A DNA stretch of 64,000 nucleotides from Tetramitus jugosus. Its lineage: Eukaryota > Protista > Heterolobosea. The translations under genes and the position numbers were made by a program. Under the pieces are notes generated by a model that was not told the origin of the DNA, made no database searches, and worked only from the letters and a program-made list of their open reading frames with translations. How positions within the stretch are numbered: the stretch's first letter is position 1; the number at the start of each line of letters is the position of its first letter. The stretch lies in the NCBI GenBank assembly GCA_937625935.1, contig OW569368.1, positions 186,001-250,000 of the forward strand, given 5' to 3'. Below, piece after piece: positions 1-45,523 of this stretch.

Positions 1-1274
1 TCCATTGAAATCTTGATTCGATAGGAAAAGAAGTAATATGGCTCTACATTGTCTATATCTGAACTTTCTGGTCTGAATAGAGCATTACATTGTATTCGAA
101 CCCCATTGGTTGTAGTGTCTGAACCAATACTGCCATCCAGCGGGAACCGCTCAATGTATCCATCATTGAATTCGTACAAGTTCCTCTGTGTCAAATCAAT
201 TACGTATTTCTCGAACCATTCAATAAAGGAACCACTAAGAACAAACGGAGTTCCTCGACCTGAGATCTGAATCACCATACCACGACGATAAATTGTATTC
301 ATGAAAGTAAAGTCTTTCATAGCGATCGCGATCAACATACGGCCACCTCTGATAATGGGCAAACAATTCGTCATCCACTTCAGATTCTGACGAAAAAATT
401 GGTTCTCAAAGACAACACTGTCTAGCTTGAGAAACGTGAGGAAACTGAGCTCGTCATACACTATATACCCTCCGAACAAGGGCGAGGGTGCCTCATCTTG
501 AGTCGATTGACCGTTGTGCATTCTATAAAAACACTCGAGTTCTTTTGGAATTGAGCAAGCTTCATCAATCTGACAATCAGCCAAAAACTGCTGCATTTCC
601 TCACGAGAAGCACCATCTAACAGAGACTCAAACACTGAAGGGCAATTCTTGTGCAAGTAAGAATCCAACTGGTCGCTCAGAGTTTTAACTTTGCGGAACA
701 CGGAAGCCAACCCACCATACTGCAATTGATACTCTCTGTAGCAGAGCTTGTTCATTTTGGCTGCAAGAAGTTCATATTGATCATTCACAGGTTCACTATG
801 ATTATGCAACAATCCACGAGAGGGACTTGAGTTCAACTGTGCCCATACTTGATCGTCATTCACAATCTTTTGAACAAGTGCATAAAAGCCTCGATACGAA
901 GCAACATCACAACGTTCTTCACCCACGCGAGCCATCTTTGTCACAGAGGGAGACAAAGCATCACCTGTTCGAGTATCATCACCTTCCTCGTCCAGGTCGT
1001 CGTCCCTCTTCTCCGACAAACGTCGCAACACGTGGGCATCGGACAAGCCATGAGGAACGTCCAACAACCATACATACTTGCACAACCACTTCCACAAAGA
1101 AGCATGACCAGACAATTGATAAAATCTGTAGCTCACACTGGAACAGGCACACAAATCTACGGGACCGAGGAATGACAAGAGCGCGATGATCGTGTCATCC
1201 GGTAAATCTTTGGTGAAATCTTCTGTCATCAAAACTTGCGATGTCATTTTCGGAATGTGCTCGGACTTGTTCAT
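1..1274 (-). CDS. FBXO3: F-box + SMI1/KNR4(SUKH) + ApaG protein (FBXO3/SKIP16-like), 3' end outside window
   Basis: Not in the ORF track. Manual translation from ATG at 1274 is open to the window edge: F-box 'DLPDDTIIALLSFLGPVDLCACSSVSYRFYQLSGHASLWKWLC', SUKH-like 'SIPKELECFYRMHNGQ...LFGGYIVYD', start of ApaG 'GSDTTTNGVRIQCNALFRPE...YYFFSYRIKISM'. Confidence 0.85.
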   Translation of the reverse strand, partial: MNKSEHIPKMTSQVLMTEDFTKDLPDDTIIALLSFLGPVDLCACSSVSYRFYQLSGHASLWKWLCKYVWLLDVPHGLSDAHVLRRLSEKRDDDLDEEGDDTRTGDALSPSVTKMARVGEERCDVASYRGFYALVQKIVNDDQVWAQLNSSPSRGLLHNHSEPVNDQYELLAAKMNKLCYREYQLQYGGLASVFRKVKTLSDQLDSYLHKNCPSVFESLLDGASREEMQQFLADCQIDEACSIPKELECFYRMHNGQSTQDEAPSPLFGGYIVYDELSFLTFLKLDSVVFENQFFRQNLKWMTNCLPIIRGGRMLIAIAMKDFTFMNTIYRRGMVIQISGRGTPFVLSGSFIEWFEKYVIDLTQRNLYEFNDGYIERFPLDGSIGSDTTTNGVRIQCNALFRPESSDIDNVEPYYFFSYRIKISM

Positions 1275-1389
1275 ATTTAAACTTGATTATGATTTTTCGC
1301 TGACTCAACTCTCTGTGATGAGATGCGATGAGATTTTTGTTGTGGCGTCGATTAATACACACGTCCTCATTGCCATGTCAAAACAAAGA

Positions 1390-2095
1390 TCAAGTCCCAG
1401 TTAGGAAAAAGATTTCTCCGCCTCGGGAGAAACAGGAAATATTTTCCTGAAAGAAATAGTCCCTGGGTGAAATTGAGAAGGATTGATTAATAACAACGCA
1501 CAAGGAGCTGTTCGTGACACTGACATGACTGTTGTTGCATTCCACACACAACTTTCACTCCAACGACCAAGGTATGCTTCATCTCGACTCTCTTCGTATT
1601 TGGTCAATGAAGAGAGAGAGCAAGGGGTGAAGTGCACTGTGTACGGCACGTTGGATCCTTTCCACAAGGGATTGGACAACCCCGCATTTAATATTTGGAC
1701 TTTCCTGTATCAGAAAGAAAACCAAACAACCAACTCCAGAAAAATCGCAACAAGCCAGTATGAAGAGAAACAAGAACGGAGTTTTTTATAGTCTAACAAC
1801 AGGGTCAATTCGGATGAGATGATGAGGAAGTCGTGCTCGTGAGTATGTAAGCTACCAACGGCAGTGAAAAATGAGGTGGTTTCATTTTCTCGCGCACGAT
1901 TGGCCTCGTCATCTCTTCCAACAATTTGATCTCGTTGTTTGGATTCAAGTAAGAGAGAGCTGAAGGTCGAAGATCAGGAAGATGAAAGGCAACCAAACCA
2001 AGAACAACTACACCCAGCTTGCAAGCAAGTCCCCAGTGTGTGCACTTCAAGGTTCCAACTCACACGAAGCTATTAGAATTGTGTGAATGGAGAAA
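1390..2095 (+). ncRNA. Candidate long structured non-coding RNA (identity unknown)
   Basis: More than 10 hand-found helices, e.g. 1816-1827/1904-1915 (12 bp), 1830-1836/1894-1900, 1576-1585/1624-1633, 1588-1597/1607-1616, 1559-1565/1649-1655, 1491-1498/1530-1537, 2060-2067/2079-2086. Non-Watson-Crick positions are G·U on the + strand. AATAAA lies near 2099. No credible ORF. Confidence 0.5.
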
Positions 2096-2341
2096 CTAAA
2101 TAAAAACTAATACCAAACACCAAAATATGTATATAACAGTTAGTGTAACTGTTAGGGAACCGCCTCGTGAAAATGTTTCAACGAGCAAGACCTTCACTCC
2201 ACTGTGGTGATTTTCAGGTGCATTCTTGCAGAAGACGAGCAAGTTCGCCATGACGACAAAAAGTGCGGTCAGAACTCGTTGACAAAAAAAAATTGATCAA
2301 ATTTTGCACCAAAAGCCAAAAAGTCAAACTCAAGTAACAAA

Positions 2342-5300
2342 ATGTTGATTCTATTGAACAAGAGAGAGAACAGAGACGTGTTCTACTATATTCTATCATA
2401 CTTGTCTGTGAGTGACATATTCTTTGATTGTTCTCTCGTGTGCAAACAATGGTTTGAGTGTGTTCGTGGTGGTGGAGGCAGCAGTCTCAGCAATTGTGCT
2501 GAAAATGATTACTTTATTCGTGGGTACATGCCATTCCTAAAGAGTCAACATTCATCAATGATGAATCAACGCAAGCACATCTTGATGCAACAACTTCAGA
2601 TGTCTGGTGTTGTAGCTTCAGCACAGGATCTCAACCAGTATGGCATGTGGTTACCTATGAATGCCTATAGTGCTCTCAGTTGGGCAATGTTCATTCCTGA
2701 TCGACCCTATAAGACAGAGCAGAGTATTTATCAATTCATGTTGAAACATGTGAGCGTCAAGGAATTTTTGATGGTGGACGATCATGGTAATGATAATGAT
2801 GACAGTGGAGAGCAACAAGTGGTTGAGCGACAAATGATTCAGATCAATCTTCCTGTTTATCCCGATGTGGATCAAGGTGGATTGCCACAGCTTGTGAAAA
2901 CCATGTTTGAAAACTTTGGTCATTCGAGCAAGCAAGGGGCAGAAAATGGGAATGACAGTGTACGAGAGTTGAAATATGTGCCTGTGCTTGTGAATGCCCA
3001 ATCATCTGTATTGTATGAGAACGAGGCAGTTATACACTTGTTTGTTGATTCAGAGAGAGGTTCAATTGCCAAGATGGATGCAGAGCAGTGTCGAGAGCTT
3101 GACTTGGAAAATTTCATGGAGAAGGGTTACAGCGTAAATACTATAAGATTTTTGCCGCGCAGTCATGAATTATCGAGCAATAAGCCATCGATTCAAAACA
3201 GGAGATTGTTTCAGTCGTTGTTAGTTGCTTTGGGATTGTCAGAAATTGATGAATCGATTCCGTTGGCAACCTTTATCCTGACAATTGGTCAGTGTTTGAG
3301 GAGTGGTGCACTCAGAGATCAATATATGAGTCCAAAGGCTTCGATCAAGGCATTTGATCATTTGTATATTGATGATATGAGTCCATATTGGTTCCAGGTG
3401 ACCAAGAAATTGGTTTGCAAGCACGATCGATTATTGACAATCTCTCCTTATCATTTACCTCCAATAGAAAAGCTGTATCGTTCCATTAATGCAATAGTAC
3501 AGACGAAACAGTATGAAAACCAAATGCCGATCGTTCTTAAGCAGATTGCTACTCATGGAACGTCTGATATGCTTTCTCATTTCCTACAAACGATACAACT
3601 TGCGAATATTCAGGATCCATCAGCGCTGATGAAGTTATTCAGTAGCGGAAGAACAGTTGATCAATCGCCTCTAGTAGGATTGCTCGAAGGTCAACAGGAA
3701 CCTGCTCAGAAATTGAAAATGTTGTCGTGTATCCTTGATGAGGAAGATATGCGAAATTTGATTATTTCTCATAGAGTGCTGCATCATGCTACTCGGATAG
3801 CGAAGATATGTTCAAAGGATGTAGTGTCCGAGTATCACTCACTCATTACTGATATTCTGTTTGAATATCTCAGGTGGCAACAATTTCCCTCTGATATTCA
3901 CCCAGACTCGCTATGTCATAATAGTCTGATTCAAGTGTTCCCTCAATTTGTACACCTCCTTGCCAATTTACCAGAGAGAGTAAGGACTTCGTGCAGCAAG
4001 AGTATTAACACTCTCGTGAACTATAACAGAAATTCCAAACTCCCTACTCCATTGCTGCGAGCAGTGTTGAATTTCCCACAATATGTCAATTCTCTGCTTA
4101 CTTTTGGTGCAGATCCATTTGAGAGGAGCACTATGGAAATGGGATTTAATTCAAAGGCAAACCCCATTTGCAATTCAAGAAGCACGTTTTCAGCCGTTGA
4201 GGAGGCATGTTTGTGTCCACAACATCCTTCGTTAGAACGATTAGTTAGTCTCTCAAATAGTGAGCACTCCCAACCTACTTCACGAGCGGCATACGATGTC
4301 TCAAGCATATCACATATTCAAAAACCTATCAATATTGTACTTATTGGTCATCCAAAGTGCGGTAAGCGGTCACTCGTAGATCATGTTCTCAATCGTCCAT
4401 GCCAACACCTCAATAGTGAGGATTACATGTTTGCCCTATCTCCGAAAGAACAAATTAGAGCTATTCGCTATCGAAGTCAGTGCGGATTGTACAATAATTC
4501 TTGTTATGATGTTGAGTGTGATTTAACGTTTGATCATCAAGTCGTCAAAGTTCATATGAAGACTGTTCATATGTTCGAATTGGATGGCCTCATTGAAAAC
4601 CAACCAATCAAGACTGCAATTCATGAGAATGATCTCCACTCCTCAAGATGTTCTGTTCAGGGTGCAGATATTGTTTTTGTGTGCTATGATATCAATAATG
4701 AATACTCAATTCAAATACTAGAGGAGATTGAAGGTATCAAATCAATGTGCTCTAACAATACTGTAGTCTCAATATTGGGTCTAGGAGAGAGCGAACCAAT
4801 TCATCGACGAGTGTTTCGTTCTGTTGTTCACCAACATGCTAAGCACAATCAAGTACAAGCATACGAGTTAAATTGTAAGGTAGAGCGTTCACAAGTTGAT
4901 ATGATCATAAAGCGCTGCATGGGCCAGTTGAGCTCTGTTACGTCAGAGACGAGAGCGTATGAAAGGTCCTATCTGCCTCGGAGATGCTACCATGCCATTG
5001 ATCTCTCTGTTTTGAGCGCTAGAACGTTAACTCGCGCGATGTTGTCGTCCTTGCAGTCTGGTTTCAGCCAACCCATTTTGGGAATTAGATCTTGCCAAAT
5101 AACTATTGAGGAGTTGTACCAGTTTGTCCAAAATCTAACTGAATCAGACAAGTTATTATTATTTGACACACTACTGGGGTGTATCAATTCTTCCAAGTGG
5201 ACTGATGTTCAGCTACTGATGCTAACATTTATGCTTGAGTCTCCATCTCTGCTTCTTGAACGATTAACTTCTCTGTTTCACTCATTGGGCTCATCGCTAA

Positions 5301-6331
5301 ACACAGAGCAATGGCTCAACTTGATTGAGTGCATTGTCATTGCATCGGGTGGAGTTGATTCCAGTGCGTCAGACGTAGTTCATAGCCTTCTCTGTCAGGC
5401 CTATGATTACGTGCGAGCAGAGTGGCTACAAATTATCAATCGAGGAGACAGCGATGATGCTCAACAAATCGAAAGATATCTTATTCAAAGATTGTATGAT
5501 GCAGATTTTAGGACTAGCACCTCCCTCCAAACCGTCACTCAAACAGTTTTATTCTTGCTTCAGAATGGCTTCCTAGATGACATTACATTTATGAATCAAT
5601 TTTACGCTGTCATGTTTGACAATGTGCTCAGAGATCAACTAAGCATAGTCGAATGTGACTTTGTCGAGTCGGTCTTCTCTATTTGTCATTCAAGAATAGC
5701 AGAGCAATGTTTGTATTTGATCAAGCAGTATAAGAGCAAAGATGCGCACATGGACAAGGTGAAGAAGACTCATTCGCTTCCTATTGACTCGAGTGTGATG
5801 GTGTTAGTCGACGGTCTAACATACCACCAAGATGTCTCTCACGCACATCAATCTGCGAATGCGATTGGAGCGATGTCTGATATTACTGTTCCGTGCAGTC
5901 AGGTATTCTCTGAACTTACCTTCCAAAATGAAATGAACTTCCTTCGCATAACGCCTGCGCCGGACTGCAAACCAAGAATCTCATGGTTGCACCAGTATGG
6001 AACAGCTGAGATGCGATTTCATACGAATTACGATGTGAAGAACATATCAGTAAGCACAGCGCAAATGGCAGTTCTGCTTTTATTTAATGATGCAAATGTG
6101 GCAAAAACAGGACTGACGCTGTCACAAGTGCTGGACAAGCTATTGCCAACATCCGTTCGTTCTTGTGAGAAAATTGTGAGCACGTACAAGTCACAAGTGC
6201 AACCATTGATACAATCAGGAATATTGGTTACACTTGATGAGTCTCCCTTTGAAGAAGCATCTTCTGTTTTGACAGTGACAACCAAGAATTGGTCTTCAAA
6301 CCGCAAGAAGATCTCCATTCCCACAAATTAA
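2342..6331 (+). CDS. F-box / ankyrin-like / degenerate Ras-family GTPase / truncated cullin fusion protein
   Basis: 1329-aa ORF. F-box 'DVFYYILSYLSVSDIFFDCSLVCKQWFE'; ankyrin-like 'TPLLRAVLNFPQYVNSLLTFGADP'; P-loop 'IVLIGHPKCGKRSL' and 'GADIVFVCYDINNEYS'; cullin-like 'IEELYQFVQNL' and 'RISWLHQYGTAEM...VSTAQMAVLLLFND...LTLSQV'. Confidence 0.8.
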   Translation: MLILLNKRENRDVFYYILSYLSVSDIFFDCSLVCKQWFECVRGGGGSSLSNCAENDYFIRGYMPFLKSQHSSMMNQRKHILMQQLQMSGVVASAQDLNQYGMWLPMNAYSALSWAMFIPDRPYKTEQSIYQFMLKHVSVKEFLMVDDHGNDNDDSGEQQVVERQMIQINLPVYPDVDQGGLPQLVKTMFENFGHSSKQGAENGNDSVRELKYVPVLVNAQSSVLYENEAVIHLFVDSERGSIAKMDAEQCRELDLENFMEKGYSVNTIRFLPRSHELSSNKPSIQNRRLFQSLLVALGLSEIDESIPLATFILTIGQCLRSGALRDQYMSPKASIKAFDHLYIDDMSPYWFQVTKKLVCKHDRLLTISPYHLPPIEKLYRSINAIVQTKQYENQMPIVLKQIATHGTSDMLSHFLQTIQLANIQDPSALMKLFSSGRTVDQSPLVGLLEGQQEPAQKLKMLSCILDEEDMRNLIISHRVLHHATRIAKICSKDVVSEYHSLITDILFEYLRWQQFPSDIHPDSLCHNSLIQVFPQFVHLLANLPERVRTSCSKSINTLVNYNRNSKLPTPLLRAVLNFPQYVNSLLTFGADPFERSTMEMGFNSKANPICNSRSTFSAVEEACLCPQHPSLERLVSLSNSEHSQPTSRAAYDVSSISHIQKPINIVLIGHPKCGKRSLVDHVLNRPCQHLNSEDYMFALSPKEQIRAIRYRSQCGLYNNSCYDVECDLTFDHQVVKVHMKTVHMFELDGLIENQPIKTAIHENDLHSSRCSVQGADIVFVCYDINNEYSIQILEEIEGIKSMCSNNTVVSILGLGESEPIHRRVFRSVVHQHAKHNQVQAYELNCKVERSQVDMIIKRCMGQLSSVTSETRAYERSYLPRRCYHAIDLSVLSARTLTRAMLSSLQSGFSQPILGIRSCQITIEELYQFVQNLTESDKLLLFDTLLGCINSSKWTDVQLLMLTFMLESPSLLLERLTSLFHSLGSSLNTEQWLNLIECIVIASGGVDSSASDVVHSLLCQAYDYVRAEWLQIINRGDSDDAQQIERYLIQRLYDADFRTSTSLQTVTQTVLFLLQNGFLDDITFMNQFYAVMFDNVLRDQLSIVECDFVESVFSICHSRIAEQCLYLIKQYKSKDAHMDKVKKTHSLPIDSSVMVLVDGLTYHQDVSHAHQSANAIGAMSDITVPCSQVFSELTFQNEMNFLRITPAPDCKPRISWLHQYGTAEMRFHTNYDVKNISVSTAQMAVLLLFNDANVAKTGLTLSQVLDKLLPTSVRSCEKIVSTYKSQVQPLIQSGILVTLDESPFEEASSVLTVTTKNWSSNRKKISIPTN

Positions 6332-6524
6332 ATGAAAACTTTCTTTTGTATTATGTTAGCTCCTCAAACCTTGGTTCACAATTCGGTTGAACTGACGGAG
6401 AAAATTCACACCGCAACTTCAAAAACGCGCACAAAGTGCAACCACAAAAAAAAACAACTAAGCACAACAAGCGTACACGCAAAATTTAATCCATCAAATA
6501 AATTCACCAAACAACATCAATAGA

Positions 6525-8543
6525 ATGATAGACGATGATATAATCAGAGATATTGGTGGATTCTCCGACGAAGACCTCGAAGGCGTCGATATTAACTCCG
6601 CCATTTCCGCGCCACAAACTTCCACTACAGCCCCTTCCTCCTCCTCCTCATCATCAAGCACCACCACCACCACCACAACAGCATCATCATCATCAACTAC
6701 ACCTCAACAATCATTTAACATTGATCGAATGAGTGATGATGAGAACAGTGATGACGATGATCATGATGACCTTGGTACTGTACCACTGGACAATGATCCC
6801 AACGATCCCATTGTTCGTCGATACGAAGTCTTTCTCACCAACAACCTTGCCAATAATTTATTTTTGTTTCAGTACCCTTTGCGCGCCAAAACGAGACCTT
6901 ACGATTTCAATCAATTGACTGAAGTTCGTTTCAAGAAGGAACATAAAAAGATGGAGATGGAGTTTGAGTTGAATACGCAGAGTGAGCACTATGATCAAGA
7001 CAATCCACAGTCCATGTCCTCATTCACGCTGGCCTCCAAGGTTGTTCCGCTGCGAACGAATTATGCAGTCGGAGTAACGAGAGGAAATCATTTGCATATT
7101 ACTCCGCTGCAAAATATTTTACAGTTCAAGACGAGTCTGGAGCATTTGGAGAGAGATGGTGGATTTGCGGGTATAGGTGAAAAAGTGGTCAACAGAGAAG
7201 ACAAGGAAAAGGGACAAGCAAGTGCCTCTTCTGCTTCTTCTTCCACCGGAAAAGCACAGCCTCAATTGGTGCAAACAACGTATAGATCTCAGGCCGATGA
7301 GAGAGCCAGACAAAAATCATATGAATACATGAAACAACAAGAGCAGGCAGAGAAGGATATGACCATGGAGTTTTATCCATCGGATCATTCGACTGCAAGA
7401 CAAGTGTTTGAGCGATTGTTTGCCACGTATGATAATCCAGTGAGCTTTGACATGTCACCGGCAGCATATCTGGAAACGTTGGTGCCGTATAAGCATGATG
7501 TCATGGCACGGTTGAAGGGAGAACAGATATCGATGGATATCATTCAGAAGATGCCTGGTGCAAAACAGGTTCAATTTGCCCTGTTTGCAGCCAATATTCT
7601 CAACTTTGATCGTATTAAACAAATGGCTACCAACGTGAAGGACGATGAACAATTGATTAGCATAATTGAAGACAATGCTGATTTAGTGAGAGGATGCTGG
7701 GTGTTGAAGAGTCACTTGAAACAGTTGAATCCGAACAATCCGAATCAAAAGTTCACAATGACAGTGGAAACTGCTTGTCGCGATTATCTAATGTACCTGT
7801 TCCACAAACAGCCTCTAGTCGATCGTATTGCATTCACAGAAAAGACAAAGTTAGATACGGAAGTGGCAAAAGAAATGCTCGAAGAGATTGCACTCATCAA
7901 GGAAGACAAATCCAGCTCAAGAAGACACGGTTATTGGTCGTTGAAGTTACCACCTGATGAGAAGTTTATGGCAAAGTATCCAGAAGTTGTCGAAAGACAG
8001 AATGAAGCATGGAAGATGAGAACACAGCAAATTTTGAATAATGTCGAGTCAAGCTTCAAGAACATTAAGCCGGCAGTGATTAGTGCAGGAGCAGGAGTTA
8101 CGAGACCACAAGATATCAATAAGGCCGTAGTGAACTTTATTAGAACTCAGTTCCAACAACATGGTGTCTGTACATTTGCAATGCTTGCAGATGCGTTCAG
8201 AACGAGCCGAGCAAACAGTGAGGCACTCTCTAACGTTGGCAATGACCATTTCAAGAATGTTTGCCAACAAATTACCAGATCATTTTGCACTGATCAATAT
8301 CTGATTTTGAAGCAAGCAGATCTACCAGAGGCCGAAGCACCAATGAGAGATGCAATCATAGAAATTTTGGAGGAGCGCAAGGATGAAAAGCTAACCAGAC
8401 AAACGATTAGTGACGAAGCCAAACAGCGACTTCCATCAGACAGCAAGCCACCACAACTTGGTACAGTCATGAAGATTTTGAACGAACTGGCTGTGGATAC
8501 CCAAGACGGTTTCTACGTTGTCAGAAAACCTGCAATCCAATAA
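6525..8543 (+). CDS. POLR3E: RNA polymerase III subunit RPC5 (Sin-like)
   Basis: 'DPIVRRYEVFLTNNLANNLFLFQYPLR', 'TNYAVGV...LHITPLQNILQFK', 'ADLVRGCWVLKS' match the RPC5/Sin_N family. Confidence 0.9.
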   Translation: MIDDDIIRDIGGFSDEDLEGVDINSAISAPQTSTTAPSSSSSSSSTTTTTTTASSSSTTPQQSFNIDRMSDDENSDDDDHDDLGTVPLDNDPNDPIVRRYEVFLTNNLANNLFLFQYPLRAKTRPYDFNQLTEVRFKKEHKKMEMEFELNTQSEHYDQDNPQSMSSFTLASKVVPLRTNYAVGVTRGNHLHITPLQNILQFKTSLEHLERDGGFAGIGEKVVNREDKEKGQASASSASSSTGKAQPQLVQTTYRSQADERARQKSYEYMKQQEQAEKDMTMEFYPSDHSTARQVFERLFATYDNPVSFDMSPAAYLETLVPYKHDVMARLKGEQISMDIIQKMPGAKQVQFALFAANILNFDRIKQMATNVKDDEQLISIIEDNADLVRGCWVLKSHLKQLNPNNPNQKFTMTVETACRDYLMYLFHKQPLVDRIAFTEKTKLDTEVAKEMLEEIALIKEDKSSSRRHGYWSLKLPPDEKFMAKYPEVVERQNEAWKMRTQQILNNVESSFKNIKPAVISAGAGVTRPQDINKAVVNFIRTQFQQHGVCTFAMLADAFRTSRANSEALSNVGNDHFKNVCQQITRSFCTDQYLILKQADLPEAEAPMRDAIIEILEERKDEKLTRQTISDEAKQRLPSDSKPPQLGTVMKILNELAVDTQDGFYVVRKPAIQ

Positions 8544-8586
8544 ATGAGTTGAATCGTTAATCACAGTCTTACAGTCAATCAACCAA

Positions 8587-9825
8587 TCAACCGTTCATGT
8601 CATCTACGATTCCAGTCGCATCAATCCTAAACTCTACAGGCTCGCCCAACAGTGGTGCATTGATCGACTTGGACAAAAAGGCTCTTCTTGTGATGATCAT
8701 TGGCTGATCAGTGCTCGTGGGTGCTCGATTATTGTGGAATCGACCAGCCACCATTGCGCTCTGTTCTGTCTTCAACAAGAACAGTCGAGTACTCGGCACA
8801 GACTTCCATATCTCTCCCAATGTGGGCTTAAATAACTTCAAAGGATGGGTCAATGTGTTGGATTGATTCGAATCCAATCGAGCCTGTGTCGCCAGATTGG
8901 TGACCAAAAAGGAAATGTTGTACTCGCTAGCCAAAATTCTCATTTGCTGCACAATGTCATACATGAGCGTATCGCCCACCGGTGTCTGAACCGATGGCAA
9001 CAATATTTGACCAATCGAATCAATCACAATCAATCTCAACGACGAATAAAACAGTTCATTATCTGATTGAATCTCCTGAACAACCATGGCCAAAATGTCC
9101 ATCAATTGAAAAATATCAAACGCTTTGGCACAACGAATCTTGCTCATCATTTCCATTAGTGTACAAAACTCTCCTGGTGCTTGAGAGGAGTAGGATGACG
9201 CTTGAGATACAGATGCAAAGTGCTGTGCTCTTCTTCTCTCATACATGGTGGCCAATTTTCTCTCACAAAACGAATTTTGTGAATCAATGTACAGTACACT
9301 ATAATTGGTTCGATATTGTGTCAGAGAGAGTGCTGTACTGAGACAAAACATGGTTTTTCCTGTTGCCTGAGGACCAAACAATTCTGTAATTTGTTTGGGC
9401 GCGATTCCACCACTCGTCAAGATTGGATCATTGTCCATCATTTGACTATTCGTATTAGCACCAGAGGAGACGGAACCAGTGGTCAACAACTGATCTAATC
9501 GATTGGATCCACATGATAATGGAAACAGTGCCAAATCTTGATCATGCTTCAACAATTGTTCTGCCGTTGTGATGGAACAAGCATAAAATTCCAAAAGCTT
9601 TTTGCGTATGGAGGGAAGAGAACTCGTGAGAGCTTGATGATCAATCAATGGTTGTTGTTGTTGTGTTGTCGTTGTGGCACAGTATTTTTGAATTTCGAGA
9701 ACGAGTTTTGACTGAGGCGAAGAAAGAAATTGTTCGACGCTGGTGATGCGGAGGGAACATTTTTCGAGTACGTTGAGTAAGTCTTCGGAGAGGATGGAAG
9801 GTGAGTGTGATCGTAATTTGGGCAT
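8587..9825 (-). CDS. RAD51D: RAD51 paralog D
   Basis: RecA fold: 'GGIAPKQITELFGPQATGKT', 'VLYIDS', Walker B 'LRLIVIDSI', and paralog-D-like 'KPTLGEIWKSVPSTRLFL'. Confidence 0.8.
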   Translation of the reverse strand: MPKLRSHSPSILSEDLLNVLEKCSLRITSVEQFLSSPQSKLVLEIQKYCATTTTQQQQPLIDHQALTSSLPSIRKKLLEFYACSITTAEQLLKHDQDLALFPLSCGSNRLDQLLTTGSVSSGANTNSQMMDNDPILTSGGIAPKQITELFGPQATGKTMFCLSTALSLTQYRTNYSVLYIDSQNSFCERKLATMYERRRAQHFASVSQASSYSSQAPGEFCTLMEMMSKIRCAKAFDIFQLMDILAMVVQEIQSDNELFYSSLRLIVIDSIGQILLPSVQTPVGDTLMYDIVQQMRILASEYNISFLVTNLATQARLDSNQSNTLTHPLKLFKPTLGEIWKSVPSTRLFLLKTEQSAMVAGRFHNNRAPTSTDQPMIITRRAFLSKSINAPLLGEPVEFRIDATGIVDDMNG

Positions 9826-10098
9826 CTTGTTGAGCTTTTAGTCTGTGGTGTGTTGGCTTTGGAATGATCACTCGTGCTGTGCTGGTTGATTGAAATTTTT
9901 GGTTTTTGTTTTTAGTGTTCGAGAAATTTCTGGAATTGGGATTCGGCGGGGGAATGACAGTTGATGTCAATGTCAAGCGCGTCCGAAACACAACAGACAG
10001 AAGCCTCTTCCAAACCAATCCCAAAAACCAAAAAAACAAGAATCCAAAAACAATAGCTTTCAAACACAAAAACAACAACAACAGCAGCAGCAACAACT

Positions 10099-13000
10099 AT
10101 GAGCAAGATCACCCTCGGTTCTCGAAGAGTAGTTGTCAAGAGTGCTACTACAGCCTCAAATGCCCCCACTTTCACACCTCAACAAACACAGTGTGTTGCC
10201 TCGTGGATCGAACACGTCGTTGAACAACCGTTGATCAATGCAAGTGACTTGCACCAGTCACTGAAAAACGGTTCTGTATTATGTCAATTAATCGGTGTGT
10301 TAAACGGTACAAAAGATATGGGTCCACACAGAGAGCCTTCCGTACCATTGAGAGAACTGGAGAATATTGCCAGTTTTATGAAATCATGTCAGGATTTTGG
10401 TGTAAAGTGTGGTTGGACGTTGAGTGCGTTGCACAAGGGATCAGATATGAACTCTGTATGTTATTATTATCACATTGTTACAAAACAGCATTTTTTCCAC
10501 TCCAGTGTCATCACCTTTCATTGAGACCTGGTGTTGCGGAGTCCATTTTTTTCTAGTTCATCAGACATCAAGCTCACACAAACTTCCTCTTGTCCGCAAC
10601 TACAATTTTTTTTTCTTTGTGTGATAAAATGTAAAAATGAATGTAATGTGTAATGATGAATCACCAGGTGATTGATCATTTGGTGCAACTATCAGAGAAA
10701 TCAAAGCAAAATGCAATTGAACAAACAACGGCAGAATATAGAGGTCCATTCCTAGACTTCAACTCACCACTGCCAACACCATTCAACCTCTCTGCATGTC
10801 AAAAACTAAAGGTTGAATGTGCCAAGAGTAAGCCTACACCTACTATTACTACGGCTACTACTACTACCACTACCACCACACCTACTACTACACCCACTTC
10901 TTCTTCTTCTTCTTCACCTACTACACCTACTTCTACTTCGACTGCTGCATCCGCAGCAACACCTGTAAAAATGAATAATTTAGCTACGAGTGGTGGTAGT
11001 GTTGATTCACCATCACCAGCTACTCCTCCTCCATCTTCAGCATCATCGTCGTCGTCAACAACGAACGCATCTCCAGTGCTACCGAGAACTGGTTCTGGTA
11101 TTTCTATGTTAGGTAAGAGACCAATTATTAGAAAAACAACGACAACAGATTCCTCTGCTGTCAATTCGCCACCTCCTGCAGATAGTAGTAGTAGTAGCAG
11201 CAGCAGCAGTAGTGCATCTCCATCAAATTCATTGAGTCCTAGTAGAACAGTGATTGTCGCTTCAAAGAGAGCCAGTATTTGCTTAAAATCATCTCCTCTG
11301 TCAAACAACTCTGCTACGGGTGGAGCAGCAACTCATGAAGCTGGAGCTTCGGGCAATAACGGAAGTCCTATCACCAAGTCAAAAGTTGTGATTGGAAAGA
11401 AGCCTGTCAGGGTAAGTATTTTTATTGTTGGCATGCAATCGGTTTAGCAAATTTGTTTACAATTTATTTGTTGTTGTTTCTTATTTTTCGTGTGTGATTG
11501 ATTACTTAGGTTGTGGGAAGTCGTCCTGTATTGTCTCAAAAGGAAATTGAGAGTGTGAATGTTGATATTGGAGACGATAGAGCCGTTTCCTATCATATTA
11601 CACAGTTGAAGACAACAAGTGGTAATGCTTCTCCAGAATACTTGCAGTCATTGGTCACTGTGATCACTCAACAAAACCGTGAATGGGTTGAACAGTTTGT
11701 CAAGGATGGTGCCATCAAGATTTTGGGAGAGATTCTGAACAAGAATGAAGCATCTTTCAAGACTGTGAAGCAAAACACAATCCAAGAGAACTGTATTGGC
11801 TGTTTGAAGGCCATTGCTGACAGTGAAGTATTTTATGGATTCGTGAAGAATTCAAAGACTGTTGCTTCTGTTGCCTTGCTATTGGACATCAAACTGAGAA
11901 GTGCCAGTCACTACACCATCAAGTCAAAGATTTGTGAACTGTTGGCTCTGATTTGTACTTTTTCCGAGGATGGTTTCTGGTGTGCATTGGATGCTATGAC
12001 AGCATACAAGAATACAAAGAAGGAAACTGCAAGATTCAGTGATTTGGTGGGCAGTTTGGCCCCTCAATTCAGATCTGATGCCAAGGTCGTAACCGCCATT
12101 GGACAGATTCCATCAGAGTTGAAGCAAGACACACAAGGATACGCACTTTTGTTTATTAATGCACTCATTAATTCGCCAAAGGATCCTTCAACTCGTTCCT
12201 TCATTCGTGAGGAGTTTACCAAGCTTGGAGCTGGCAAGTATGTTGAGCAGATGAAGGAGGATATTTCCACAGGAGTTATCACTAGCAAATTGCTCATTTC
12301 GCAGGTGAAGGAATACGAAGAAGAAATGTTGAGTGCATTGATCGATGAGGAGATGACCACCAATACAACAGATGCTGCAGAGGCTGACGATGATCATGAG
12401 GATGGTGTATCAGCCGAGTCACCTACAGAGGAAGTGAACATAGAGGATGTCTTGAGATCATTGAAGTTAAAACTGGGCAGAGCCGCTGGAGGTACGAGTT
12501 CTCTTGCTGATGTGCTCAAATCTCTGTTGAAGCTTTCACAAGTCACAACCAATGATTCTATCCTATCTACCAGTTTGAAATCAATCAGTGGTATGTTGAA
12601 ACATCTTGTGGAGCAATCAATGAGCAAACAGGACAAGGGTCAAGTTGAAGATGTACTGGGTGAAATCAGCACATTGAACAAGAGAATCAAACAACTTGAA
12701 AAAGATAAGGAGCTGTCGAAAACCAGCGACAAAGTGCTAGACAAGTTAGCAAGTGAAAAGAATGAACTGATATCTGAAGGCAACAAGCTGAAAACAGAAT
12801 TGAATGTTTTGGCGGATCAGATTCAAAAGATTACCACCGAGAAGAATTCTTTATTGAATCAGTTGAAGACAAAAGAGCAGGACTTGGAAAACTCCAAGAA
12901 GGGTGATTCTGAACAAGTTACACACCTGAAAACAGAATTAGATAATCTTCGAAGAGACATCTTGGAGAAAGAGAAGTATGCTGTTCAAAAATTCGAAAAG

Positions 13001-15070
13001 GAAGTCATCTCAAAGATAGAAGGACAGCTGACAGTGATCGATAGACACACTGGTGATATCCCAATTGCGTCCTCACTCAATGATCTCCCTCCACTCGAGA
13101 AAGCAATTGCCAGAATCTCCAATACTCACTTTATCGTTCTCGACAGAAGTATTCAAGAAGCATTGGACAATGAGGCCAACACCACTAACACTGATGATGA
13201 TAGCGCAATTACTAATTTGAAACTTGAAGTTAGGATGTTGAAGCAACAGAGAAATACTCTGTTGAAGAAGTTGGAAGAAGGTGGCTCTTCTTCAACTGAA
13301 GTGAAGAAGCTCCAAGGTGAGATTGAACAACTTCGCAAGCAACTGGCAAGTGCTCAGTCAATGTCCGCTTCCGTTCCGCCACCACCCTCCATTAATGTTG
13401 TTGATACCGAATCCACTGATACCGCAGGTGACATGCCTCCCCCACCACCACCAATGTCTGGCGTTGCACCACCACCTCCTCCTCCTCCTGGTATGATGGG
13501 TGGCCCTCCACCTCCACCACCAGGTCCAATGATGGGTGGCCCTCCTCCACCACCGGGCATGATGGGAGGACCTCCACCACCTCCTGGTATGATGGGTGGT
13601 CCTCCACCTCCAGGTATGATGACAGCCAAAGCTGGTCCTTCTCTTCCACAACTTCCATCGATCGGTACCCCTTCAAAACCAATGAAGAATTTCTATGGAG
13701 ATGCCATTGCAAAGAATAAGGTTTCTGATACAATTTGGGTCAAGGGTGGTATTATTGATGAGATTAACTCTGTCAATATTGATGTGAATGAAGTCGAAGA
13801 GCTGTTCTCTAACGAGACGACAACAAAGGCTAGCACCTCATCAGAGGTTGACACTCCAAGAAAAGCCAAGAAGGAGCTTGTGTCATTTGTTGAACCTCAA
13901 AAGTCTACCAATGTGGCTCTACTTCTCGGTTACATGAGAATGGAACCAAAGCAGATCAAGGATGCTATTGTCAATATGGACGAGGAAAAGTTGTCTCAGG
14001 CAAATATTGAGGCATTGAAGGACAAGACTCCAACGCCTGATGAAATTGAACAATTGACAGCATATACTGGAGATTACAATCTCTTGTCAAAGACCGATCA
14101 ATTCTACTTGGAGATCAAGGATATTCCAAAATTGAGCACACGGTTGAATTGTTGGGCATTCAAATTTAAGTTTGCCAATGATGTCACTCAATTGTTGCCT
14201 GATATTGATACCCTCACATTAGCTGTTACTGAAGTTCTGGATAGCAATAGATTTAAGCGATTCTTGTCTGTTGTTCTAGCCGTGACAAACTTCTTGAATG
14301 CCAAGTCATCAAAGAAGGACTCCTATGGTTTCAAGCTGAAGTCACTTGTTAAGTTGGCCGATACCAAGTCATCTAAGAACAACATGTCTCTATTGCAATA
14401 TATTGCTGTATTCTGTGAGAAGAATGAGCCTGATCTGCTCGAACTGGGTAAGGATATGGCACATTTAGATGCTGCTACTCGTGTCAGTTTACCAGACGTC
14501 GTGAATGAAGTGAAGAAGCTGCAAATGGGTGTCAAGCTTGTGGACTCTGAAGTGAAGAACAATGAATCAAGTTCTGACAAGTTTTCCAAGGTGATGAAGA
14601 GTTTCTTGAGTGATGCACAGGAGAAACTTGATGACATTACAGGTGCTTTGATTAATTTGGATGAACAATTGACCACATTAACCAACTCGTATGCTGAAGA
14701 GGCTGCCATGATCAAGAACCCTACAGAGTTCTTGCAGAATTTGAAGAAATTCATCGACCTCTACCACGAAGGATACAGAGCCTATCTGAGAAGAGTTGAA
14801 CTTGAACGAAAGAAGCAGATGCAAGCAGCCACAGAAGAAAAGATGAAGACACAATTAGCAGAGGCCATGAACAGAAGAAAGTCGATTCGTTTGTCAGAAG
14901 TGCACCTAGACACAACCGAAAAGAGCTCTGGAATCAGATCAGCTCTTGTCAATGGTGACGCCTTTAGACACAGAAGATACTCCAGATTTGAACAACCAGG
15001 CTCCCAAATGCCCGTCAATCCATTCCCAGGTACCTCAGGGCTGAGGAAAACGAGCTTCTCTCAAAAATAA
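10099..15070 (+). CDS. Diaphanous-type formin with N-terminal calponin-homology domain; exons 10099-10455, 10668-11411, 11510-15070
   Basis: CH domain 'LHQSLKNGSVLCQLI...LENIASFMKSCQDFGV'. Phase-0 introns 10456-10667 (GTATGT..CAG) and 11412-11509 (GTAAGT..TAG) join three ORFs in frame. GBD/FH3 'LLFINALINSP', poly-Pro FH1, FH2 'VLAVTNFLN...YGFKLKSLVKLADTKS'. Confidence 0.88.
13434..13620 (+). repeat. FH1 tandem repeat (GMMGGPPPPP)n within the formin
   Basis: Repeated ggtatgatgggtggccctccacc-like units encoding profilin-binding polyproline tracts. Confidence 0.85.
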
Positions 15071-43123: not shown

Positions 43124-45523
43124 ATGCAGCATTCATCATCATCCAATCATCATCAACAACCACCACAGGAATCTTCATCATCCTCTCCAACAACAAGTTC
43201 CCAATTTTCCTATCCCTATCACTCCCAACAACAGCAACAACAACCCTATCAACAACAGACACAACCGCAATCGCAACCACAGCATCACATTATTAAACAA
43301 ACAACGATATCACAACAACAACCTCAACAACCTCATGACATGATGTATCAACCGCAACAACAACAACAATCCATATCCTCATCATCTTCGTCATCATCAT
43401 CATCCTATCAAAGAATGGCACCACAACACCATCATCATTCTCCTCCTCCTCCCCCTCTTCAACACCACAATTACCAACATTATCCTTCTACGAATGCTCC
43501 TCAAGCAAGGATGGAGTCATTATCATCATCATCACAACAGCAGCAGCAGCAACAACCACTATCACAACAACAAATGGTGCATGCGCCAGCTACATATGCA
43601 TCACCTCCCAATGTCAATTCACCATCCGTCACGACAACCATACCCAAGAAGGGTCCTAGTTGTCATCACTGCAGACAATCTCATATTGGATGTGACGGAA
43701 ATCGACCATGTCAAAACTGTGTACGAAAAAACAAGATTTGTTTCGATTATGACAAGAAATTGATACGGAAGAGTGTAGGTGGAGGTGGTGGTGGTGGTGC
43801 CAGTAGTAGCACACCTGGTGCTACAAAATCCAAAGTACCACCTCCATCAACAAGCACTCCACCACCACCACCACCAACATCGTCATCATCAGCAACCACT
43901 CCAACTCCAACAACAGTCAATGAGCAAGTGTACCATAGAAACAACAACAACAACAACAATAGTAATATTGGATCGTTTCATTATGTAGAAAACACAATGG
44001 ACAACAACAATCAAGCTCAGAATATGGGTAGCGGAAATATTAGTCATAATAACAGTAGTAGCAATCATCAGTTTCATGCGATTCAAATGATGGAACACGA
44101 GATGGAGTCGATTCGAGAGCAGTTGAACAAACGAGATGAGCAAATGAAGGATTTGGCAGTGCAGAACCAGTTTTTGATGAAGGTGGTGAACGAGTTGAAA
44201 GAACTTGACAATCATCATCAAAAACAATCACCATCCTTGCAAGGCAGTAGCAGTACAGGTATTAGCAATGTGAACAAGACGAGTAGTGGCAACAATAATG
44301 ATGATTTTTACATGTTTCAGACTCCGCAACAACATGAATATTCGCTCATGGTGTGGGAACCACCACAGGAATTATTGAGACCATGTTACATGTTTGATAC
44401 AGTCACGTTTCGTATCATTGGATGCAATCGAGCATTTTGTGAAATGACTGGGTACTCTGTGGAGCAATTGAAGAGAACTTCATTGTTTTCCCTGTTACCG
44501 GAGCGTTTGAGAGAACCATGGAAGGTTTTACTACAGTGGGCTGCTTACAGTTCCATTCAAACTGTATGTCGCGTTTTTTAATTTCGTTGTCTTTTTTGTG
44601 GTGTTTTCTTCTCGTCTAACACAACGTTCATATTTGGTTGAAAATTCATGGTGTATTTATTACTACTACTACTACTATGACTACTACAACTACAGTTGGA
44701 TGGAACAGGCATTGTGTTGTTTAGTGGAAATCGAGAGAAGTGTGTCAAAGTGAGACGCGTGATTGAGAAGAATTTTATGCGAGTAGAGTATGAGCCGACG
44801 ACGATATTCACCGATAGTTTTGTTGTGGATGGCATTCAGATTCCAGAGACTTTTCGGATCATGTACAATGAAGTGTTGCATCAAAACATGTTGGCCATTC
44901 CGACAACGTCCTATCAACGCCTATTAGATTTGTTTGTCAAGCTAAAGTCGCTACGGGAGACACATTATACTTCATTGCCCGAGTCATTGGGCAATGTTCA
45001 TCGTCCTTCGCCATCTGCTTCTCCGCAACAACCACAATCGCAACAACAATACTCTCAATCACAACAATCGCAACAACCACAGACGCAGCAACAGGTACAA
45101 CAGACAGGAAGAAGTAGTAGCGATAGCAACGGTGAACAAGGTTATAGCAATACGAGCTGTAACAGTATGAGCAATAACGCTAACAGTTCAAGTGCGCACG
45201 GAGCAAGCGGTAGTTCTTTGGGCTACCAAGCTACAGTACATCCTCCAGAGTACGAATTTCAGCAATTAGCAGACAAGTACGGTGCAAAAATCTACTCTCA
45301 GATGATTGCTGATCAACAGCAACAAAGCAGCGCACAAGTAATTCAACCTCAGTACTCTGCGACTCAACCAGTCACATACACGTACACGCATACTCCCTCC
45401 GGTACCGTCATTAGTCTGCCTCATTCGATGGAAACGTTCTCAATTTCTATGGCGAACGATCAATCTGTCCCGATTGTGCGACCGGCGTTGCCCTCTCATG
45501 TATTTCTAGGAAAACCAACCTAA
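43124..45523 (+). CDS. Zn(II)2Cys6 binuclear-cluster transcription factor with PAS domain; exons 43124-44563, 44696-45523
   Basis: 'CHHCRQSHIGCDGNRPCQNCVRKNKIC', coiled coil, PAS 'RIIGCNRAFCEMTGYSVEQL'. Phase-0 intron 44564-44695 (GTATGT..CAG). Confidence 0.85.

Follow-up and report, generated by a model that had tools for sequence, protein, structure and literature searches.

The window analysed here is a 64,000-nt stretch of the heterolobosean amoeba Tetramitus jugosus, corresponding to G000:C25:186001-250000 of an assembly of 26.35 Mb in 56 contigs. The genome is intron-poor, and the genes of the window are long, uninterrupted ORFs of eukaryotic type, among them those for RPC5, formin, tubulin cofactor D and class III PI3-kinase. 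For a protein flanking the locus described below, Willaertia magna and Acrasis kona supply the best named relatives. Repeats of (CCCAAA)n were found at the left ends of all 20 of the 20 contigs sampled (L002-L021), indicating that the telomeric G-strand repeat is TTTGGG and that the assembly is close to telomere-to-telomere. Six full-length SSU rRNA genes of 2,117 nt each are located on small contigs, five in alternating orientation on C53 and one on C55; identical, weaker SSU matches (508 bits) on C54 and C56 are possibly organellar and duplicated.

The locus of interest is a spacer of 1,067 bp (positions 1275-2341) separating two outward-facing, head-to-head F-box genes. On the minus strand lies an FBXO3-like gene (1-1339, ATG at 1274), the full ORF of which encodes a protein of 516 aa with F-box, SUKH and ApaG/DUF525 domains identified by Pfam. 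On the plus strand, positions 2342-6331 encode an F-box-cullin fusion protein of 1,329 aa, also recognized by Pfam and represented by the orthologues P0007 and P0008. A JGI contig of 1,640 nt (3300026424; L024) is 98.3% identical to window positions 1-1339, a level of identity pointing to a close strain of this amoeba in the corresponding sample. It covers the FBXO3-like ORF together with 66 nt on the 5' side and 23 nt on the 3' side and terminates just past an AATAAA; it would thus appear to be mRNA-like, and would place the 5' end of the FBXO3-like gene near 1339. The initial annotation had called the gap between the two genes unusually long. Searches of the spacer revealed no tRNA or tmRNA and no ORF recognizable by Pfam.

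The sole sizeable plus-strand frame of the spacer, at 1483-1791, is of doubtful status. A Pfam match is lacking, comparison with 1.84 billion representative proteins yielded no homologue, and in codon score the frame falls between real genes and spurious frames. A translated match of 22 bits, equalled by 1 of 400 shuffles, connects it with approximately 8152-8436 (minus strand) of L025, the contig of a relative that is described below, where the corresponding frame is open and has no ATG. The frame is probably non-coding, although the translated match and the codon scores leave a small doubt; it could represent a fast-evolving micro-ORF or residual non-coding homology. The open frame ends 21 nt before the hairpin that is the main subject of this report, and about 70 nt before its counterpart in the relative.

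Positions 1390-2095 of the spacer had been described initially as a non-coding segment densely folded over some 700 nt. Every one of the helices then listed was recovered in local minimum-energy folds, and the 706-nt segment as a whole folded better than its shuffles (20 shuffles for each strand gave z-scores of -3.4 for the plus and -1.1 for the minus strand), an excess that is driven by positions 1812-1919 alone. When every 120-nt window of the 64 kb was folded on both strands and the native MFE corrected for GC content, the stretch 1801-1920 (plus strand) ranked first among the 5,324 GC-corrected 120-nt windows, and the other plus-strand windows within the segment had a mean corrected score of -0.05. 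Shuffle tests yielded z-scores of -7.7 (plus) and -5.4 (minus) for the hairpin stretch 1806-1925, -0.51 (plus) and -0.84 (minus) for the upstream part of the segment at 1390-1790, where folding is ordinary, and -0.90 (plus) for the downstream flank at 1945-2244. Since the excess of folding derives from the hairpin alone and the flanks are at shuffle level, the original observation is only partly confirmed: a real, functional-looking hairpin does lie inside the segment, but the dense folding over its whole length comes down to this one element.

The other helices are less striking. The helix at 1491-1537 had a z-score of +0.9 in a post hoc window chosen from the initial annotation, and the remaining listed helices reached about -2.7 to -3.65 in windows that were likewise hand-picked post hoc. 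They include a second, moderately stable local stem system at 1559-1655 (plus strand; z -2.8 on the plus and -2.7 on the minus strand); the stretch 1561-1680 (plus) is in the top 1% of plus-strand windows, yet it is not conserved and is without a match in the relative. A small hairpin at 2053-2091 is followed by an AATAAA at 2098-2103 (2053-2103, plus strand; z -3.4 on the plus and -3.65 on the minus strand), and the latter signal could possibly mark the 3' end of a plus-strand transcript. Next in stability among the 120-nt windows comes 43777-43896, which consists of (GGT)n facing (ACC)n; it was rejected as an RNA gene, being a coding low-complexity artefact inside a Zn2Cys6 and PAS ORF (43124-44581).

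The element that accounts for the folding is a conserved long hairpin of about 108 nt at 1812-1919 (plus strand), with an MFE of -54.8 kcal/mol and a z-score of -7.7. It comprises about 32 conserved stem pairs and an apical extension. Within its 5' arm is an invariant 24-mer (1815-1838, plus strand) that starts with U and is identical at 24 of 24 positions in the relative, which makes it a candidate for a mature small RNA or for a sequence-specific recognition site. The 3' arm (1887-1919) is less conserved, with 22 of 35 aligned columns identical, and complementarity is kept through wobble and compensatory changes; the loop region, 1844-1886, is unalignable between the two species. A fold of 1750-1980 adds a lower-stem extension in which 1791-1808 pairs with approximately 1926-1944 (1791-1944 in all, plus strand). 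The relative possesses no equivalent of this extension, which is therefore a feature of this genome only. The hairpin is present in a single copy: the spacer, the 24-mer and a covariance model (R1) built from the two-species alignment each matched this locus alone, and no other genomic site resembles the 24-mer at up to 3 mismatches. A MITE or transposon inverted repeat was rejected on the same three grounds.

The relative is represented by L025, a 12.3-kb Logan contig from run SRR25266757. The two flanking proteins both have orthologues on it, at 38% identity in each case, and their genes are in the same head-to-head order around a spacer of 819 bp. The 24-mer is found at 8048-8071 of its minus strand, in the same orientation relative to both genes, and is the longest exact word common to L025 and the whole 64-kb window. 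A BLAST comparison of the two spacers gave an E-value of 3e-8, with nothing aligning apart from the 24-mer; for comparison, the coding stretches best conserved between L025 and the window share about 70% DNA identity. A homologous hairpin is located at L025:7937-8075 (minus strand) with a z-score of -9.3, and the 24-mer is again within its 5' arm. The hairpin stands at comparable distances from the FBXO3-like ATG in the window and in L025 (536 and 489 nt), whereas its spacing from the ATG of the cullin fusion is not kept (421 versus 191 nt). An AATAAA follows the hairpin by 179 nt in the window and by 167 nt in L025.

The two hairpins were aligned with the stem ends as anchors (alignment A2), and all comparative values refer to two species only. 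A common structure of 32 pairs on this alignment has 90.6% of its cells paired, as opposed to 31-53% in a slide control that shifts the 3' partners by 1-3 columns. In four of the 32 pairs both sides have changed with pairing preserved, and in one more a GC has become a GU. The compensatory pairs (1812/1919, 1814/1917, 1839/1891 and 1843/1887) are situated directly outside the invariant block, at both of its ends. Identity amounts to 27 of 33 positions in the 5' arm, including all 24 of the core, and to 22 of 35 (63%) in the 3' arm, and the loops measure 43 and 71 nt. In a shuffle control of covariation, 31 of 500 shuffles reached the observed score; this control is weak with two sequences, and it is hence the 24-mer, the conserved genomic position and the slide control that carry most of the case. 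Compensatory changes in the syntenic region of a relative are thus seen, limited to 1812-1919 and to two species, and conservation does not extend to the rest of the 700-nt segment, as nothing outside the hairpin is conserved in the relative. The hairpin is very probably a functional RNA structure.

The initial annotation had also taken the repeated G·U pairs on the plus strand as a sign of selection on an RNA. For the main hairpin in this genome, the bias is real: the plus strand contains three G·U wobbles, which are A·C on the other strand, and it folds 13 kcal/mol better (-54.8 versus -41.8 kcal/mol). The hairpin of the relative has no such strand bias (-71.1 versus -73.8 kcal/mol), with the consequence that the strand assignment is just moderately supported.

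We compared the locus with the known RNA classes for which it had initially been considered a candidate. For telomerase RNA, the longest template-like match was a 7-mer at 1993-1999, which is at the background rate (0.6 matches of 7 nt expected per 1,067 nt), and 1275-2341 contains no permutation of CCCAAA long enough (8 nt or more) to serve as a template for TTTGGG; this identity was rejected. RNase P RNA gave no covariance match at E<=10 in 1100-2500, and a candidate nuclear RNase P RNA (RF00009) is encoded elsewhere in the genome, at G000:C5:502463-502782 (plus strand), with a score of 60.4 bits that is above the family cut-off. RNase MRP RNA was not matched at E<=10 in 1100-2500, nor anywhere in the genome, and the SRP and U3 RNAs were likewise without an Rfam match at E<=10 in 1100-2500. 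Overall, Rfam returned nothing at gathering thresholds across the whole window and sub-threshold noise alone at E<=10 in 1100-2500. Two further classes were dismissed. A C/D snoRNA does not fit because the AUGAUGA at 1819-1825 is Watson-Crick paired with UCAUC in both species, no CUGA is present near the 3' end in either species, and the Rfam snoRNA matches are far below threshold. A SECIS element does not fit because no model matched at E<=10, the AUGA is inside a regular helix, and the upstream open frame ends in TAG and is without homologues. The suggestion of a new lncRNA or structured leader survives in a reduced form, in that the long arm 1816-1843/1889-1915 is conserved and co-varying, but not as an RNA of 700 nt.

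Outside the two species, neither sequence patterns nor the covariance model revealed the hairpin in L066, L070, L027 or L028. Upstream of the cullin-fusion orthologue it is missing both from L066, a JGI contig (3300062347) in which the gap measures just 83 nt, and from L070, where the 758 nt upstream fold with a z-score of -0.14. In Willaertia (L027) and Acrasis (L028), there is no hairpin at less than 10 kb from the FBXO3-like gene. These absences near orthologues argue against an obligatory leader element of either gene, and leave two species as the known carriers. When metagenomes were scanned with a 19-mer, 37 matches resulted, none of which extended into the flanking conserved bases and most of which were on GC-rich contigs; we therefore read them as chance. 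A viral scan for homologues of the hairpin gave one match, on the same contig, which is also attributed to chance. In comparison with window positions 2342-15070, L066 has kept the order cullin fusion, Rad51-like, CH-domain and formin; it is without the intervening RPC5 gene and has a Syja_N gene upstream in place of the FBXO3-like gene. With this arrangement, the block of conserved genes has its left edge precisely at the spacer that bears the hairpin.

A frozen arm, a partner arm that drifts yet continues to pair, and a loop free to change are the look of a small-RNA precursor, and the sequence comparison suggests that 1812-1919 is probably either a precursor of this microRNA-like kind or a regulatory RNA structure. 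More specifically, the reading to which we tentatively give the most weight, though at somewhat less than even confidence, is that of a single-copy, microRNA-like hairpin gene with its own non-coding transcript, in which the hairpin would be the only selected part. Several properties are in keeping with this proposal. The invariant block is weakly paired at its 5' end (a U x U mismatch here and a U-A pair in the relative) and rich in G-C at its 3' end, in agreement with the rules of guide-strand selection. In each species, mismatches and bulges affect at most 3 positions of the putative 24-nt duplex, namely U x U, a 1x2 internal loop and U x C in the window, and U x U and a 2-nt bulge in the relative. 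The duplex is accordingly within the limits for plant-type stem-loops (an unbranched duplex with up to 5 mismatches, few of them asymmetric). In the two species, the presumptive mature arm is conserved above both the partner arm and the loop. As for the machinery, there are two Piwi-domain ORFs (971 and 942 aa) and at least four ORFs with two RNase III domains. A target, on the other hand, was not found: a genome-wide search at up to 3 mismatches, rDNA contigs included, identified no site of extended complementarity and only chance-level hits, a wobble-tolerant target pattern also remained at chance level, and the flanking mRNAs of the two species share no duplex site for the 24-mer.

The transcription, strand, processing and any target of the hairpin are matters that we infer from such features of the DNA. 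In the proposed mechanism, RNA polymerase II would transcribe the plus strand from upstream of the FBXO3-like promoter towards the AATAAA at 2098; runs of T4-T5 inside the hairpin of both species argue against Pol III. A Dicer-like RNase III would cut the hairpin. One of the two Argonautes would then take up a 21-24-nt small RNA that has U1815 as its first base and comes from the invariant 5' arm, with the drifting 3' arm as the passenger strand.

An alternative that we consider possible, if rather doubtful, is that the hairpin acts in cis within an mRNA, as the binding site of a protein or the substrate of an RNase III, for which the invariant arm would be the recognition sequence. It could belong to a long 5' leader of the F-box-cullin fusion and affect translation or stability, or it could be located in the 3' UTR of the plus-strand ORF at 1525-1791. 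The leader is consistent with the hairpin having the orientation of the cullin-fusion gene in both species; however, its spacing from the cullin ATG has not been kept, and the short gap of L066 and the hairpin-free upstream region of L070 indicate that a leader hairpin is not a general feature of this gene. The 3' UTR draws on the open frame that precedes the hairpin closely in both species, with its weak translated match and intermediate codon scores, but the small ORF is without an ATG in the relative and without a Pfam match or a homologue among the 1.84 billion representatives. The AATAAA at 167-179 nt past the hairpin in both species and the failure to find a target in trans also count in favour of cis action.

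The hairpin might also be a structured non-coding RNA of some other, undescribed kind that is not processed by Dicer; it could, for example, be a scaffold for a dsRNA-binding protein or a hairpin RNA that base-pairs through part of the 24-mer. We regard this as unlikely. Selection on both sequence and structure, the lack of an Rfam family and the lack of a microRNA-style target in our searches would all be accommodated, but no positive feature of any specific class was seen, small-RNA precursors are typically marked by just such a long, near-perfect stem with a single invariant arm, and RNAi genes are present in the genome.

More improbable still is an inverted repeat acting at the level of DNA, as a cruciform or as a paired site for a dimeric factor in a promoter shared by the two F-box genes. 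The position in the shared promoter region of outward-facing genes, conserved at 536 and 489 nt from the FBXO3-like ATG, and the equal folding of the two strands in the relative are what such a repeat would lead one to expect. Paired protein sites, however, should be equally constrained, and the two arms are not (24 of 24 versus 63%); pairing in this genome is kept by three G·U wobbles, which do not stabilize DNA; and arms of 30 nt or more that are 43-71 nt apart are far beyond typical factor sites. Finally, a globally folded RNA of about 700 nt, whether a telomerase RNA or an RNase P/MRP RNA, can be set aside as extremely improbable, because the whole-segment z-score of -3.4 (plus) and the A/C-rich single-stranded tracts are outweighed by shuffle-level folding and a lack of conservation outside the hairpin, a 7-nt template match at background, an RNase P RNA encoded elsewhere and no Rfam match at E<=10.

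For animals and plants, there is ample documentation of conserved microRNA-type genes. Among protists, to our knowledge, most lineages have either no reports of such genes or read-based predictions that lack cross-species support, and we know of no deeply conserved microRNA family described earlier in the excavate (Discoba) protists. Returning to the microRNA-like reading in its strongest form, it is conceivable, although we would sooner expect otherwise, that 1812-1919 is a genuine microRNA gene that has retained an unchanged 24-nt guide across heterolobosean lineages whose neighbouring proteins are about 38% identical. If this were true, excavate protists would gain their first deeply conserved microRNA family, which would imply that long-lived small-RNA regulators arose outside animals and plants. 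The locus offers a concrete and cheap target for small-RNA work in heterolobosean amoebae, namely an arm frozen over 24 nt within surroundings that have diverged beyond alignment. Should it not be a small-RNA precursor, strong selection would still be acting on an RNA (or DNA) structure situated between two genes for ubiquitin-ligase adaptors. The analysis also removes a false lead, since the locus is not a telomerase or RNase P/MRP RNA and the apparent dense fold is one hairpin in an ordinary spacer.

Among known systems, telomerase RNA has in common with the locus an intergenic non-coding setting, stems and A/C-rich tracts, and differs in that the locus has no conserved global fold. Another parallel is provided by mRNA hairpins recognized by RNase III or by proteins, such as the Microprocessor-cleaved hairpin in the DGCR8 mRNA and the substrates of yeast Rnt1. 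Like these, the element described here is a conserved hairpin beside a coding gene, in the same orientation, with constraint on both sequence and structure. Unlike them, its membership in either mRNA is putative, and orthologues of the neighbouring genes elsewhere are without the hairpin; nor is there a conserved recognition loop, of the AGNN type or otherwise known, since the loops cannot be aligned. A further comparison is with Naegleria fowleri, for which microRNAs have been predicted with miRDeep2 from small-RNA sequencing (2025 preprint; PMC11761746). The supplementary file of that preprint that is in text form contains neither the 24-mer nor the hairpin. Judging from protein hits, N. fowleri would belong to the same broad group of amoebae, and the proposed class of RNA is the same; its predictions have reads without cross-species conservation, whereas the present candidate has conservation without reads. 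The hairpin is also comparable with microRNA precursors of the plant and protist type, single hairpins cut by a Dicer-like enzyme, as in land plants, Chlamydomonas and Dictyostelium. The hairpin differs from these in its invariant block of 24 nt rather than the typical 21 nt, in being known from two species only, and, relative to plant microRNAs, in having no near-perfect target in our searches, such targets being their usual mode. What it shares with them is a long, near-perfect stem-loop in an intergenic position, an invariant arm opposite a drifting paired arm, a loop of variable length, a U at the start of a weakly paired 5' end, and a genome that contains Argonaute and Dicer-like genes.
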